NCBI RefSeq assembly: GCF_000143415.4
Contig: NW_003314262.1
Location: forward strand, 5,862,304-5,926,303
Source of the DNA: Selaginella moellendorffii
Lineage: Eukaryota > Plantae > Lycopodiophyta
DNA: 64,000 nucleotides
Direction: 5' to 3'
Notes under the pieces: generated by a model
The model's database searches: none
The model's input: only the letters and a program-made list of their open reading frames with translations
What the model was told of the DNA's origin: nothing
Part shown: positions 11,929-19,348 of the stretch, in pieces
How positions within the stretch are numbered: position 1 is the first letter of the stretch
Layout: every line of letters begins with the position of its first letter
Position numbers and translations under genes: made by a program

Positions 11929-14124
11929 ATGGAGCTTTTTCAATCGCTCCAATGTCCTCGAAACGATCAATGCTTTGAGGTAATCTCCCAGCTCGTCACT
12001 GCCTTGAAATCATGCAGGAGCTCCAGAGACCTCCAAAAGGGAAGGCTCGTCCACGCAAACGCCGCTCACAATGGACACGACTCCAACATTTACATTGCAA
12101 ACACGCTGCTCAGCATGTACGCTAAGTGTGGAGCCATGGTGGACGCTGCTCGAGTCTTCGCCAAAATGGATCGCCACAGCATCGTCTCCTGGAACTCGCT
12201 CATCCTGGGATACGCCGAGAACGGCCAAGGCGAGCTCGCGCTGGTTCTCTTTGCGAGCATGGAACGCAGGACAAGCTTCCACTTTGATGGTCGGACTTTC
12301 GTGGCTGCGCTGAAGGCTTGCACGAGTTTGGCCGTGGAGGAGTCCAAAGCTTCCGGCAGCAAAACGATGGTGAAGCCTGTTTCACTGGAGAAATCCATGG
12401 CTGTGCACGCTCTCGCGGCAGCCCGAGGCTTTCAAGAGGATGTTTTCGTGAAGAACACTTTGGTGGACGCGTATGCGAAGTGTGGGAGCATGGCCGACGC
12501 TTGGAGAGTTTTTGCCGGTGCTGGGAACCGCGACTTGATTACCTGGAACGCGCTCGTACAGGGATTTGCAGACTGTGGAGAAGAACAGCTAGCTTTCGAG
12601 TTTCTCTCGATGATGGAGGTGGAAGCTCTTCGAGCGGATGGTTTGAGCTTTACTGCCAGTTTCAAGGCCTGTGCCGGGCTGGCCGAGAAGGAACAAGGCC
12701 GGGAGATCGACGGGACGATGGTAAAGACCAAGGCTCTCGAGAAAACCATGGCTTTGCACGTCCAAGCTTCTCGGAAGAACTTAGACTCTCGCGAGATCAT
12801 GGTGGTGAACGCTCTGGTTGACGCCTATGCCAAGAGTGGGAGCCTCACGGACGCGAGCAGGGCCTTTGCGAGAATCCAGAAGCGAGACTTGGTGCTGTGG
12901 AACACGCTCCTCGCGGGACACGCATCAAACGAGCACGGAGAGGAAACTTTGGATCTCTTCTTCCAGATGATCATGGATGATCACACCGAGCCGGATGCTC
13001 GGAGCTTCGTGGCTGTGCTCAAGGCCAGCGGCACCATGGTCGCCTTGAGCGCCACCCGGTTGATCCACTCGGAGATATGCCGGCGTGGAGTCGCGGACGA
13101 GAACGAGATCATCGCGTGCTCGCTGCTGGATTCATACGCTCGGTGTGGAAGCATGCAAAGCGCACTCCAGGTATTCGATTCGCTTGCAAAGCCTGACTCG
13201 GTGCTGTGGACTGCGTTGCTTTCAGGATATAGCCGCGAGGGAAACACCCGGCTCGTGTTTGAGACGTTCCGCGCGTTTCTCGACCAAGGCTTTCTTCCAA
13301 ACAGTGTGACTTTCGTGTGCCTTCTCACGGCGAGCAGCCACGCCGGCCTGGTCGCCAAAGGCCAGGCGATCTTCCAAGCGATGGAGCTAAAGTTTGGGAT
13401 CCAGCCAGGGCCGGAGCACTACCTCTGCGTGGTGGATCTCTTGGGACGCGGTAACAGGCTAGACGAAGCCGTGAAGATGGTGGAAGCCATGAAAGGTGCT
13501 ACAGTCGGGCACTGGATGACCGTCTTGGGGGCTTGCAAGAAGTGGAAGAACGCAGAGATGGCAAAGCTCGCTTTCGAAAAGGTGGTGGAGCTGGACGAGA
13601 GAGATCCTGCTGCTTACTCGCTCATGCTTGCGACTTATGCGAGCTTGGGGATGTGGCAGGAGATGCCGCGAGTTTACGAGATGAGGAGGAAAGGTGGCGG
13701 GCTTGCGAGGCCGGGATTGAGCTGGTGGACGGACGAGACGGGGGCAGTGCACAAGTTCGTGGCCGGGGACGTGCGGCATCCACAGATGGAAGAGATCCAG
13801 CGAAAGTTGGGAGAGCTCGCGGTGAAGATGGACGAACAAGGCTACGTTGCGGACTTGGCGAGCTCTGCGAGGAAGAGAGCTTCCGACGCCGAGAAGGAGA
13901 GGTCACTGTGTTGTCACAGTGAGAGGCTGGCGATCGCGTGTGCGCTCGTGAATTCCTCCCCCGGGACTACGATCAGGATTGCGAAGAACTTGAGAGTTTG
14001 CGACGATTGTCACTCGGCGACGGCGTTTTTTTCCAGGATTGAGCGGCGGGAGATCATCTGTAGGGACTCGAGCAGGTTCCACGCGTTTCGCGATGGTGCT
14101 TGTTCGTGTGGAGACTTCTGGTAA
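11929..14124 (+). CDS. PLS-class pentatricopeptide repeat protein with E/E+/DYW deaminase domain (ends DFW); organellar C-to-U RNA editing factor, intronless
   Basis: Repeated 'NTL..MYAKCG..A..VF..M...VSWN.LI.GY' motifs, PG box (PGLSW), HSERLA and CDDCH zinc ligands, C-terminal CSCGDFW. Confidence 0.96.
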   Translation: MELFQSLQCPRNDQCFEVISQLVTALKSCRSSRDLQKGRLVHANAAHNGHDSNIYIANTLLSMYAKCGAMVDAARVFAKMDRHSIVSWNSLILGYAENGQGELALVLFASMERRTSFHFDGRTFVAALKACTSLAVEESKASGSKTMVKPVSLEKSMAVHALAAARGFQEDVFVKNTLVDAYAKCGSMADAWRVFAGAGNRDLITWNALVQGFADCGEEQLAFEFLSMMEVEALRADGLSFTASFKACAGLAEKEQGREIDGTMVKTKALEKTMALHVQASRKNLDSREIMVVNALVDAYAKSGSLTDASRAFARIQKRDLVLWNTLLAGHASNEHGEETLDLFFQMIMDDHTEPDARSFVAVLKASGTMVALSATRLIHSEICRRGVADENEIIACSLLDSYARCGSMQSALQVFDSLAKPDSVLWTALLSGYSREGNTRLVFETFRAFLDQGFLPNSVTFVCLLTASSHAGLVAKGQAIFQAMELKFGIQPGPEHYLCVVDLLGRGNRLDEAVKMVEAMKGATVGHWMTVLGACKKWKNAEMAKLAFEKVVELDERDPAAYSLMLATYASLGMWQEMPRVYEMRRKGGGLARPGLSWWTDETGAVHKFVAGDVRHPQMEEIQRKLGELAVKMDEQGYVADLASSARKRASDAEKERSLCCHSERLAIACALVNSSPGTTIRIAKNLRVCDDCHSATAFFSRIERREIICRDSSRFHAFRDGACSCGDFW

Positions 14125-14170
14125 GATTAAAGAGGTACTTTCATTCGCAAAAACGTTTTCCATTGCAACT

Positions 14171-15952
14171 CTAGCGAGCTAAGAACTTGTTTGTAGCTAG
14201 AACAAGCTCTCTTGCTATACCTTTCTCATACATGGAATGGCCAGAATCTCCCACTGCGAGTATCACCAGTTTAAAACCTTTGCGAAAAGCTTCTCAAGCA
14301 TACCGATTTTCAGCTCAGCCTCTGGCCACGCGCAGTGAAGGTCGACCGCATTCTGGAAAGACGAAACATCTAGCAAAATGGGAAGGAAAGAATCGCGAAT
14401 GACTCACAACAACGGGACAGACAAAATCGTAGCGACCATGGATGATCACACAAGGAATGTGTCTGATCCTCCTTACTCCTTCCAAGAGCTGCTGGTCTTT
14501 CAGGAATCCGTTTCTCATCTGTGGATGTGTTAGCAATGAAACAAAGAAGAAGAGAAAGAGAAAGAAGGAGAAGAAGAACTTACAGAGTAATGGCATTCTA
14601 GCCTTGCTTGAACAACTTGAGAAGGCATTTTCGCATCGCCGGTAGGAAGCCACTCAAGAGTTTGATGATCTACGAAAAAGAACATGCAATGGTCGTGAGA
14701 AACAATTCTTATCACTGTTAGACTACCAACTTGTTTTTTCTTCCGCGGCTAGGCTCAGGATCTAGCACGAAACATGAAAAGCCTGCAAGTATTAGAAGCA
14801 ACAAAAAGATCAAACAGCCACGAAGGATTACAGCAATACTCTTACTTTTCCGGAAGGATTCGAGTATTGCTCTCCATTCCAAGCGAGCGATTGTTCTATT
14901 GAGAAGAAGCTAAGAGCCATCTCCCATGAAAACCAGGCCCGACTCTGGAAATACCAGTTATTTTAGAGGACGAAACTAGAGCTGGATTCTTACTGCTGAT
15001 AGCTGGCGGGAGGGATCAGAGGAAGTCAATCTTTTGTAGAACGACGTCAAAACATCGTTTTGTTCGTCCGGCTCAAGAACTGACACGAAGTTCTTCCAAG
15101 AAAACGGGAAGATCGAGCTTGCACCGCCCTGGTGAAGAAAAGTATGGTGAAAAAAGAAAAGAAAAACTCTAAGTTCAAGTCCAAACTTTCACCTGTTTGT
15201 AGATCCAATCGATCTCCCTCTGGCGAAACAAGCACACTCCTCGCAGTATAAGCGCATGGACAACTTGTGGATAAGCTTGTGCGTAGGCAAGTCCCAGCGT
15301 TGCTCCCCAAGAACCACCAAGAACAAGCCATCTTTCGATAAGAAAAAACAAAGAAAGAACGATTGAGTGACGAGATCCTTCTTGGAGAGTTGAAAGTAAA
15401 GAGAGAAAAGTTCCAAGATGACGAACCTCTCGACGTTCAAATGCTTCCGTAGCTTCTCCAGATCATCCACAAGGTCCCAAGTCGTGTTCTCTTGGAGGCA
15501 TCCTTTCGGCGTGGATTTGCCACAGCCTCTCTGATCAAACAGCACAATGTGATAGTGCTGGGAATCGAAGAACTGTGCATGCCTTCGTGTGCATCCAGCT
15601 CCTGGACCTCCATGAAGAACTGCAAAAAAAAAATTAAAAAAATCCACTTGAGAACTCACAGATTTCTACGCAAGTAAGACGCTCGACCGATCGCCACTTA
15701 CACACGGCTGATTGTCCGCAACGATTTCCAAAAGTCTCATAGTAAATGGTGTGGAGCTCCGAGACTTTGAGGTAGCCATTAGAGATGCTGGAGCTGGGAG
15801 CAAACAAACTGGAAGAAACCGCGGCTCTACAAACAAAAAGGAAGATAAAAGACTTTGGGTCGATGGGTAGCAAACCTGGAGGATTGGAGCGACACATTTC
15901 TATGGTGGTGATGGACATAGCCGCCAGTGGAACCAAAGAACACCATCGCCAT
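14171..15952 (-). CDS. PIP: Proline iminopeptidase (peptidase S33), multi-exon, probable N-terminal transit peptide
   Basis: HGGPG oxyanion motif, FDQRGCGKSTP, ENTTWDLVDDLEKLRKHL, GGSWG nucleophile elbow, HGRYDFVCP and SGHSMYE. ATG at 15952 (MAMVFFGSTGG..) splices in frame through the first intron. Stop TAG at 14173-14171. Confidence 0.92.
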
Positions 15953-15982
15953 TCTTGGCGGAACTTAGGTCCTTCCTTTTGG

Positions 15983-16007
15983 AGCGGTGAGCGTGGATCG
16001 AACACGC

Positions 16008-16050
<43 letters not shown>

Positions 16051-16055
16051 CCCGC
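15983..16055 (-). tRNA. tRNA-Phe(GAA): tRNA-Phe (GAA), cytosolic plant type, 73 nt, intronless
   Basis: Reverse complement is GCGGGGATAGCTCAGTTGGGAGAGCGTCAGACTGAAGATCTGAAGGTCGCGTGTTCGATCCACGCTCACCGC-T. This matches the canonical plant tRNA-Phe as I recall it, except at position 73. A and B boxes are intact. Confidence 0.97.
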
Positions 16056-16182
16056 TTATCCGTCTAATTAATCCCATTATCAGATTAAGCACGATTTGTT
16101 CTTGAGCTAAACGAAAGACTAAAACAGAAAAAAATATTCCCTTGATTCGTATCAACAAGCTCTTGTCTATGGCCGAAGAAGA

Positions 16183-19100
16183 TCAAACTGGGGACAGGAG
16201 CTGCGACTGCGAGGATGACAAATCCCCAAAATCCGTGCTGCTCTCCTCCTTGTTCTTCCCGGGCCTGGCATCGCCCAGCATTTGCACAACATCCCGCATC
16301 GTCGGCCTGTCCACCGGGAGATCGCTCGTGCACAGCAGCGCCACTCTCAGCACCAGCATGATCTCCTGGAGCGGCAAATTCTCCTCCCGGATCCGCGAGT
16401 CGAGCACCTCCAGCACCCCGTCCTTGGTCTGGATCTTCTTCCTCACCCATTGCACAATGTCCACTCCATCGCCAAACTCCGGCTCGATCGGCCGCCGCCC
16501 CGACACGAGCTCCAGCAGCACCACTCCAAAGCTGTAGATGTCGCTCTTCTCGTTCACCTTGAGCGTGTAAGCATACTCTGCGAAAGTTCCCAAAAGTTCG
16601 TTAGAACCGGACACTCAAGAACCCTAAAAAACCACCTCAAGAACCCCAAAAAACCGAGCTCTCTCTCTCACCTGGGGCGATGTAGCCATAGGATCCGGCG
16701 ATGGAGGACATGGATTCCGATTTCCCCGAGTCCTGGAAGAGCTTGGCGAGGCCGAAATCCGCGACGCGCGCCTGGAACTCGGCGTCGAGGAGGATGTTGT
16801 TGGATTTGACGTCGCGGTGGACGATGAGCGGCGAGCAGTCGTGGTGGAGGTAGCACAGCCCATTGGCGGCCTGGAGCGCGATCTTGTAGCGCGTCGCCCA
16901 GTCGAGCATCACGGCGCCCTTGCTGGATCCATGGAGCGCCTCCCCGAGGCTGCCATTGGGCATGTATTCGTAGACGAGGACGTTGGTCTCCTTGTTGGAG
17001 CAAAACCCTAGGAGCTTGACGATGTTGCGGTGCCGGATCTTTCCCAGGGTCTGGACCTCCGCCGAGAATCCGTGATCGCTGTGGCTCATGGAGCCGCCGA
17101 TCTTGCCGCGCGCTACCCCTGCCGCGGCCGCGGGATTGAATCCCGAGAGCTTCTTCACCGCCACGATCTCGCCCGACGGCATCACGCCCTTGTAGACGAT
17201 GCCCGATCCACCGCGGCCGATGATGTTGTCCTCGTTGCTCAGGCATTCCAGGATGTGGGCGACGCTGAATCCCCCCAGCTTCTGGAACGCGGTGAGCTTC
17301 CAGGCCCCGGCGCCGCGCGATCGCGGGCGCAAGAACCCTAGCCGGCAGAGGTAGCGTCGGTACTTCCGGAAGAAGCAGCACACGCCCACCACCAGCACCA
17401 GCAGCGCCGCGGAGAAGAGCGCGCCGACGAGCCACGCCAGGAGCTCCGGATCGCTGCGCCCGCGCCCATGGCCGCCATAGCCGCGAGAATTAGGGTTCTT
17501 GGGGCACGGCCCCAGCGGCGCGCCACACAGCCCGAGATTCCCCACGTAGCTGCTGCGATTGAAGGCCTGATCCGTGGCCGGGATGGCGCCGCTGAGGCGA
17601 TTGTAGGAGAAATCCACCGAGTTGAGGCTCTGGAGCAGCGCGATCCCCCGCGGGATCCCGCCCGAGAATGCGTTCCTGGAGAGGTTGAGCACGCCCAGCA
17701 CCTCGAGCGCTTCCAGCGATCGCGGGATCTCGCCGGAGAGCTGGTTGACGCTGAGATCCAGCATTGTGAGCGAGCGGCAGCTGCCGACCTCTGGAGGAAT
17801 CCCTCCCGAGAAGAAATTGTGAGTGAGATTGAGCTGGAGGAGCCATTGCATCCGCCCCAGCCCCGCCGGCACCGCGCCCGCGAGGCGATTGTAGGAGATC
17901 TGGAGCTCCTTGAGCATGGAGAGCGCTCCAATCCCCTCGGAGATCTCCCCCCGGAGAAGATTCTCGCTCAGATCGATCTTCTCGAGCTTGGGCGCGGCGA
18001 ATTCCTCGTCGCCCATGACCCCGTCCAGCTTGTTCCTCATGAGCTCCACCATGTCGAGATTGGGCAGCGCGAACAGCCCCCGCGGGATCGCGCCCGAGAG
18101 GAGATTGTCGCCCAGCCGGACCTTCTCGAGACTAGCGCACGATCCCAGCTCCTCGGGGATGGATCCCGAGAGGCGATTTTGCTGGAGGATGAGCGTCGCG
18201 AGCTTCCCTCCGCGGCAGAGGCTGGATGGGACGCTCCCATTGAGCGCGTTCTTGGAGAGGTCGAGCATCCATAGCTGCCCATTCCCGCCCAGGAACTCCG
18301 GGATGGCGCCCACGAATCCATTCCCCCATAGGAAGAGGACTTCCAGATTGGGCATGTCGCCCACGAAGGAGGGGATCTCCCCGGAGAGATTGTTGCGGAA
18401 GAGATTCAAGAGCTTGAGCTCCTGGAGCTTCTCCAGGCTCGCGGGGATCCCTCCGGTGAGCTGGTTGCACGAGAGATCCAGCGATTGCAAGGCCCGGAGG
18501 CCGCCGATCGCGTCGGGGATGGATCCGGCGAGGGAATTGAGCTGGAGGAAGAGCGTGTCGAGGCGGCGGAGCCCTCCCAGCTCGATCGGGATGGAGCCAT
18601 TGATGCCGGCGCTGGCGAGATCGAGGCGGCGGAGACTCTTGAGCCGTCCGAAAGATCGAGGGATTCCTCCGGAAAAGTGGTTGTAGTAGCCCAGATAGAG
18701 CTGCTCGAGCGACTCGAGATCGCCCATCTCGGCCGGGATCTCGCCGCTAAGATCGTTGCCCGAGAGCGCGAGGTATTGGAGGCTCTTGATGGATCCATAC
18801 TCGCGTGGGATGGAGCCCGAGAAGAGGCTGCCGCCCAGGTGGACGTGGGCGAGCAATGGCAGCGCCGAGAGGCCGATTGGCAGCGCGCCCGTGAAGTTGT
18901 TGTTGTAGGCGTCGAGGATCGCGAGCGATGGCGAGGCGGAGGAGAGATTGGCGGGGAAATCGCCGCTGAAGTTGCAGTGGGAGATGTTGAGGTAGCGGAG
19001 GAGCGGCAGCGCTCCCAAGAGCTCCGCCGGGAGGGCGCCGCCGAGATCGTTGACGTCGAGGGAGAGATTGGCGAGGGCGGAGAGGCGCGAGAGCGTGCCC

Positions 19101-19348
19101 GGCGCGATCGATCCCGAGAGGCTCATGTTGGAGAGCGTGAGAGAGGAGACGCGGTTCTGGGAGTCGCAAGTGATTCCTGTCCAGCGGCACGGCGTTGCGT
19201 CGGATTCGTTCCAATCACGCAGGTGGGTCGCTGGATCCTCGATCGAGGCCTTGAATGCCAGGAGTGATTGGCCATCCGGTGTCAATCCCTCTGCCGCGGC
19301 CGTGAAGAACACGAGGATCGCCAAGAACAGGGGAGTGATGGGCGTCAT
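16183..19348 (-). CDS. LRR receptor-like kinase subfamily XI, BAM/CLV1-like; exons 19348-16672, 16577-16183
   Basis: Signal peptide, about 20 plant LRRs ('YLGYYNHFSGGIP'), TM, 'WKLTAFQKL', 'DHGFSAEVQTLGKIRHRNIV', HRDVKSNNILL, DFG and GSYGYIAPEY across a 94-nt GT-AG intron (16671-16578). Confidence 0.95.

Follow-up and report, generated by a model that had tools for sequence, protein, structure and literature searches.

A tRNA-Phe gene between two co-oriented genes of Selaginella moellendorffii and the absence of its downstream T runs from one haplotype

Locus layout and the tRNA gene of the window

The region considered here lies on scaffold GL377566 (GL377566.1) of the Selaginella moellendorffii assembly GCA_000143415.2, of which a stretch of 64 kb, referred to below as the window and representing haplotype 1, was analyzed with positions counted from its first letter. 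On the minus strand, the stop codon of a BAM1/CLV1-like LRR receptor kinase gene (RLK) is followed by a 127-nt spacer, a tRNA-Phe(GAA) gene, a 30-nt spacer, and the ATG of a proline iminopeptidase gene (PIP). This arrangement had been proposed earlier from the letters alone (the original prediction), and both the gene order and all of its coordinates, from the end of the RLK stop codon at 16183 through the tRNA to the PIP ATG at 15952, proved correct. The features of the locus are as follows.

16183-19348, minus strand: BAM1/CLV1-like LRR receptor kinase gene (RLK), 1023 aa, SELMODRAFT_77558, XP_002962293.1
16185-16183, minus strand: RLK stop codon TGA, read from the sequence
16056-16182, minus strand: spacer of 127 nt between RLK and the tRNA, read from the sequence
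15983-16055, minus strand: tRNA-Phe(GAA) gene, called by ARAGORN and Rfam RF00005
15953-15982, minus strand: spacer of 30 nt between the tRNA and PIP (46 nt in haplotype 2)
14171-15952, minus strand: PIP gene (proline iminopeptidase), 375 aa, LOC9629128, XP_024542994.1
15952-15950, minus strand: PIP ATG, the same as in RefSeq model XP_024542994.1
15876-15952, minus strand: PIP exon 1, 77 nt, MAMVFFGSTGGYVHHHHRNVSLQSS-, where two RefSeq PIP proteins begin
15827-15875, minus strand: PIP intron 1, 49 nt, GT..AG, in agreement with RefSeq model XP_024542994.1

The tRNA-Phe(GAA) gene at 16055-15983, of canonical cytosolic type, is the sole tRNA that ARAGORN finds in the 64 kb, and it matches Rfam family RF00005 with 64.2 bits (E 1.2e-11) against a gathering score of 29. 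Its A and B boxes are intact, and the cloverleaf is the minimum free energy structure of the 73-mer. A scan of the whole window at the Rfam gathering thresholds returned no family besides tRNA, and no small nucleolar RNA (snoRNA) downstream of the gene. Position 73 of the tRNA (15983) is a T and not an A, and CCA follows immediately at 15982-15980, two details that were absent from the original prediction; because of this CCA, ARAGORN extends the tRNA to 15980 (76 nt). The discriminator A73 is an identity element expected in cytosolic tRNA-Phe.

No run of four Ts (T4) follows the tRNA on the window allele until 15850-15847, at +134 and inside PIP intron 1, as had been claimed, and a run of five (T5) at 15839-15835 lies within the same intron. 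The resulting T4-free stretch of 133 nt is not rare in itself, as TTTT is absent from about 50-55% of 133-nt stretches in the window, and it is unusual only through its position after a tRNA gene. At least four Ts are the accepted minimal terminator of RNA polymerase III (Pol III; PMC13437025), and in flowering species poly-T is found immediately 3' of at least 90% of tRNA genes (Michaud et al., as cited in PMC8166872).

Comparison with the allelic haplotype

Both haplotypes of the sequenced plant are present in the S. moellendorffii assembly, where gene pairs that are nearly identical and share their neighbors represent alleles (PMC3095285). The second protein in the cluster of RLK is SELMODRAFT_83051, encoded on scaffold GL377570.1, and the allelic locus there (L002, haplotype 2) is collinear with the haplotype-1 locus (L001, base for base the reverse complement of window positions 25348-10183), with ADK, DCN1-like, LRR, RLK, tRNA, PIP, and PPR-DYW in the same order. 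In a MAFFT alignment the two loci show 98.4% identity; indels number about 47 over the 15 kb, and about 14 have a length of at least 9 nt. The tRNA body is identical at 72 of 72 positions and PIP exon 1 at 77 of 77, and both PIP alleles are intact, their proteins being identical at 370 of 374 residues. The spacer between RLK and the tRNA is the most diverged stretch between the haplotypes at this locus, its roughly 127 nt containing 9 substitutions as well as 3 small indels (window 16056-16182 compared with L002 9160-9284).

Immediately downstream of the identical tRNA bodies, the two alleles differ. In L002 the body is followed by A73, then by TTTTCTCGTTTTG, and then by GCTCCAAAAGGAAGG, which is common to both alleles. 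The T4 runs of haplotype 2 begin at +2 and +10 after the acceptor stem, whereas the first in haplotype 1 is the one at +134, and in haplotype 2 ARAGORN reports a tRNA of 73 nt, compared with the 76 nt including CCA in L001. The two tRNA-gene features that the window allele lacks, at least four Ts shortly downstream and A73, are both present in L002. The difference maps to the following position.

15983-15986, minus strand: deletion junction, where 16 nt of haplotype 2 are missing, from the MAFFT alignment of L001 and L002

The 16 nt absent from the window allele, GCATTTTCTCGTTTTG, include A73 and both T4 runs, and the GC microhomology at their bounds leaves their exact placement ambiguous. The haplotype-1 junction reads CACCGC-TCCAAAAGG, with the acceptor stem running directly into TCCAAAAGG, and the haplotype-2 form consists of the acceptor stem, A, and TTTTCTCG. 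Because A73 and T4 directly follow the same tRNA on the allelic scaffold, the missing terminator of the window allele is a haplotype-specific 16-nt deletion. This result does not support the reading of an evolved tRNA-mRNA co-transcript or of a use of the tRNA as punctuation. Judged from the two sequences, the lack of a terminator most probably reflects a recent lesion of this allele and not an evolved device of either kind. We consider it likely that the locus holds a standard Pol III tRNA-Phe(GAA) gene, placed in a short spacer between co-oriented genes of RNA polymerase II (Pol II), whose terminator has been lost from the window allele through a 16-bp deletion at a GC microhomology. The allelic copy resembles a canonical plant nuclear tRNA gene with a Pol III type 2 promoter in every respect considered, namely a high-scoring tRNA with intact A and B boxes, an AT-rich upstream region, A73, and T4 at +2 and +10; unlike that canonical form, the window allele has, through the 16-nt deletion, neither the discriminator A nor a T4 for 133 nt.

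The direction of the change can be argued from the terminator itself. Among simulated sequences of matched composition, only about 6% have a chance T4 in their first ~15 nt, so the T4 state of haplotype 2 is a real terminator signature. Given this low figure, the minimal terminator of at least four Ts, and the poly-T behind at least 90% of tRNA genes, the long form on GL377570 would be the functional and ancestral state and the window allele the deletion. The opposite polarity, in which the short form with its encoded CCA is ancestral (for example as a retro-copied mature tRNA) and haplotype 2 has gained 16 nt, draws on the fact that acceptor stem, T, CCA, and AAA look superficially like a reverse-transcribed mature tRNA. 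We regard it as extremely improbable, as a random 16-nt insertion would have to supply A73 and two T4 runs in exactly the right places, the extra 16 nt of haplotype 2 are no duplication of its flanks, and the discriminator is a T where a copy of mature tRNA-Phe should have an A. In addition, the TCCA that adjoins the acceptor stem in the window allele is also present in haplotype 2, 16 nt further downstream, which on this alignment identifies the encoded CCA as a by-product of the deletion junction. A tRNA retro-copy or a tRNA-derived short interspersed nuclear element was considered as a candidate class and rejected, as the deletion allele alone has CCA next to the tRNA and no flanking direct repeat was seen.

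It is very improbable that an error of assembly or sequencing in GL377566 produced the 16-nt difference and that both chromosomes carry a normal terminator. A single assembly is the source of both sequences, and the absent piece is T-rich with a 2-nt repeat at its flanks, two points in favor of such an error. However, with the number and lengths of indels seen between the loci, one of 16 nt is typical of real haplotype variation. Moreover, the alleles are distinguished by flanking single-nucleotide polymorphisms (SNPs) at 15960 and 15959, CG in the window and TT in haplotype 2, which indicates that haplotype-specific reads went into the assembly of this stretch. The main effect of the result is to dispose of a false lead, in that a striking terminator-less tRNA is accounted for by a haplotype-specific 16-bp deletion, and it suggests that in a two-haplotype assembly odd local features should first be compared with their allele.

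Transcription across the tRNA gene

If the internal promoter of the window allele still fires, Pol III would cross the spacer, the PIP ATG, exon 1, and half of intron 1 before stopping at the T4 or T5 in that intron, giving an RNA of about 210-220 nt in which PIP exon 1 would be copied in sense. Part of the Pol III might already stop at weaker T-rich sites ahead of these runs, since human Pol III is known to use non-canonical terminators (PMC3141230). The original prediction of a Pol III trailer running through PIP exon 1 is valid, as a prediction, for the window allele. When the expected read-through RNA of 209 nt (15847-16055) is folded to minimum energy, 28 positions of the tRNA body pair with the trailer. 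A trailer this long might draw the body away from the cloverleaf, but little weight is given to this modeled effect. The product of the window allele would carry U73 in place of the Phe identity element A73, and the CCA at positions 74-76 of its pre-tRNA would generally inhibit tRNase Z. Because of the expected read-through, U73, and an encoded CCA presumed inhibitory to tRNase Z, the window allele is probably a poor or dead source of tRNA, a hypomorphic or dying copy, the loss of which would be buffered by the intact allele and other tRNA-Phe genes. In this it is like the allelic variation and mutation load described at nematode tRNA genes (PMC13010820), where a lesion likewise segregates on one allele of a multi-copy family; unlike that variation, the present case concerns a deletion of flank and discriminator, with a predicted redirection of Pol III into a neighboring gene, in two haplotypes.

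Should the tRNA gene be active, the deletion allele could yield a stable chimeric tRNA-PIP-leader RNA, an allele-specific change in PIP expression, or both, an outcome that we think unlikely. A change in PIP expression might come about through interference between Pol III and Pol II or through an altered transcription start. If true, this would be one of the rare cases in which the protection that a Pol III terminator gives to a downstream Pol II gene can be read out in vivo. The two haplotypes of one plant amount to a natural heterozygous experiment, with termination 46 nt before the PIP ATG on one chromosome and predicted sense read-through on the other, and since the allele pair differs in both Pol III terminator and discriminator and is marked by two SNPs, RNA-seq could reveal an effect of read-through on the Pol II gene.

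In both alleles, RLK, the tRNA, and PIP are most likely separate transcription units whose control regions abut or overlap. The intergenic DNA between RLK and PIP, including the tRNA, comes to 231 bp in haplotype 1 and 244 bp in haplotype 2, and the 127-nt spacer upstream of the tRNA must contain the RLK 3' untranslated region (UTR), its poly(A) signals, and the AT-rich, TATA-like region upstream of the tRNA. The observation that PIP has almost no promoter space of its own is real and common to both haplotypes (30 and 46 nt). A tRNA at most 46 nt from a start codon and 127 nt from the preceding stop codon makes the locus well suited to the question of how Pol II and Pol III units share DNA where a plant genome is compact. 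In Arabidopsis, where a tandem tRNA gene follows at a distance of less than 200 nt, Pol II terminates more sharply, about 60 nt short of the tRNA (PMC8613925), and RLK has such a gene, on the same strand and 127 nt downstream. The Selaginella case is like the Arabidopsis one in the layout of a Pol II gene and tandem tRNA in a compact genome, and unlike it in that the effect on termination is established for Arabidopsis and a supposition for RLK. By analogy, a tRNA gene bound by TFIIIC and TFIIIB may help to halt Pol II arriving from RLK and so insulate PIP.

A further explanation is that Pol II makes a tRNA-mRNA co-transcript in both haplotypes, with the tRNA in the PIP leader or in the RLK 3' UTR and the deletion incidental to it; PIP transcription would start upstream of or within the tRNA, or RLK would be read through, and RNase P and RNase Z might excise the tRNA. 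We judge this unlikely, although several observations favor it. The adjacency used to recognize dicistronic tRNA-mRNAs, typically less than 1 kb, is found on both sides of the tRNA, with 127 nt to the RLK stop codon and, to the PIP ATG, 30 nt in haplotype 1 or 46 nt in haplotype 2. The DiRT survey of nine S. moellendorffii RNA-seq libraries placed 23 tRNA genes in 49 dicistronic tRNA-mRNA candidates, the most among its nine species; tRNA-Phe(GAA) loci on GL377576 and GL377565 are among these candidates, whose intervals span 1-2965 bp and are in some cases as short as 1-10 bp (PMC8166872). All dicistronic tRNAs in that study kept their poly-T (PMC8166872). Seventeen probable RNA runs contain fractions of 0.27-0.50 of the sampled words from 14150-16900, and with about half of the words found in such RNA-like runs, at least one of the two genes RLK and PIP is expressed.

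Other observations speak against it. The complete DiRT Table S7 (PMC8166872) has no entry on GL377566 or GL377570, so that the locus is found among the rows of neither scaffold. The dicistronic tRNA-mRNA class as such is already published for S. moellendorffii, and the statement that no such arrangement had been described in a seed-free plant was thus wrong for the class, although the published candidates do not include the present locus. Tandem tRNA genes located downstream halt Pol II in Arabidopsis some 60 nt short of the tRNA, with no read-through, and a tRNA in the 5' leader would open the mRNA to decapitation by RNase P and RNase Z. The adjacency of tRNA and PIP is also not conserved in Diphasiastrum. 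The comparison of spacing in other lycophytes that had been suggested was carried out at the PIP locus of Diphasiastrum complanatum (53 kb), where ARAGORN found no tRNA, and a Logan contig of a related PIP likewise gave no tRNA with ARAGORN; judged from Diphasiastrum and this one contig, the adjacency shows no sign of deep conservation.

The present locus is like the published DiRT dicistronic tRNA-mRNAs (PMC8166872) in the short distance, tens of bp, between a tRNA gene and a protein-coding gene, and unlike them in that the published ones keep their poly-T, while here the locus is unlisted, its poly-T is deleted on one allele, and its co-transcription is hypothetical. Transport of dicistronic tRNA-mRNAs through the phloem has been reported in Arabidopsis and tobacco (work cited in PMC8166872). 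Plant tRNA-snoRNA dicistronic genes, which are transcribed by Pol III and whose tRNA genes are without poly-T (Michaud et al., cited in PMC8166872), offer a likeness in the terminator-less tRNA gene from which Pol III is expected to continue downstream; as these genes are characterized in that citation, the difference is that what follows the present tRNA is no snoRNA but coding exon 1 of a Pol II gene. A tRNA-snoRNA Pol III dicistron was also tried as a candidate and rejected, since PIP exon 1 lies downstream and the window has no other Rfam match.

Several points weigh against an ordinary tRNA gene with one damaged allele, the explanation preferred here. The polarity of the indel rests on the universality of A73 and poly-T and on the microhomology, not on an outgroup, and the deletion is known from a single Sanger assembly. 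The protein clusters of RLK and PIP have NCBI members only, and in the protein collection no Logan RNA contig encodes either. Absence from the DiRT candidates is weak evidence, as that survey used old JGI gene models, at least 10 reads on the protein-coding gene, and an intron-based t-test. Even with an intact terminator, the upstream DNA private to PIP measures just 46 nt, and it is possible that Pol II starts PIP upstream of or inside the tRNA. Finally, the CCA anti-determinant may have no effect on plant TM-type tRNase ZS (PMC3161902), and 3' processing of the window allele may consequently still work.

Neighboring genes and gene models

A 903-aa open reading frame (ORF) of RLK is 100% identical to S. 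moellendorffii SELMODRAFT_77558 (XP_002962293.1); the gene call at L001 6001-9166 corresponds to window 19348-16183, and its coding sequence has a single short intron near 16637-16614. The PIP protein scores 363.6 bits against the prolyl aminopeptidase equivalog TIGR01249, which has a cutoff of 259.75. A literature search with the gene identifiers of the locus gave no match.

The PIP ATG and intron 1 given in the original prediction are identical in the RefSeq protein XP_024542994.1, and an in-frame TAA lies 15 nt 5' of this ATG, within the 30-nt spacer. Older JGI models of PIP use other ATGs as starts and retain intron 1. With intron 1 retained, the frame of exon 2 is open back to ATGs near 15919 and 15897 (region 15827-15920), and the old JGI model EFJ37552.1 begins at 15897. 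In haplotype 2, PIP intron 1 contains an extra in-frame ATG that is the start of its old model (L002 9480-9530). Reading these frames together, spliced and unspliced PIP transcripts could each encode PIP with differing N-termini.

On its other side, PIP meets a convergent gene.

12115-14124, plus strand: PPR-DYW gene, convergent with PIP, its ORF ending at 14124

The PIP stop codon TAG (14173-14171, minus strand) and the PPR-DYW stop codon have 46 nt between them, so that the 3' UTRs of the two genes must overlap, and this spacing illustrates how extremely compact the neighborhood is. PPR-DYW is called with 669 aa in haplotype 1 and 740 aa in haplotype 2, a difference of either gene models or alleles. 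A 92-nt indel between the haplotypes lies at window ~10834 (L001 14515), in the region of L002 11239-14726.

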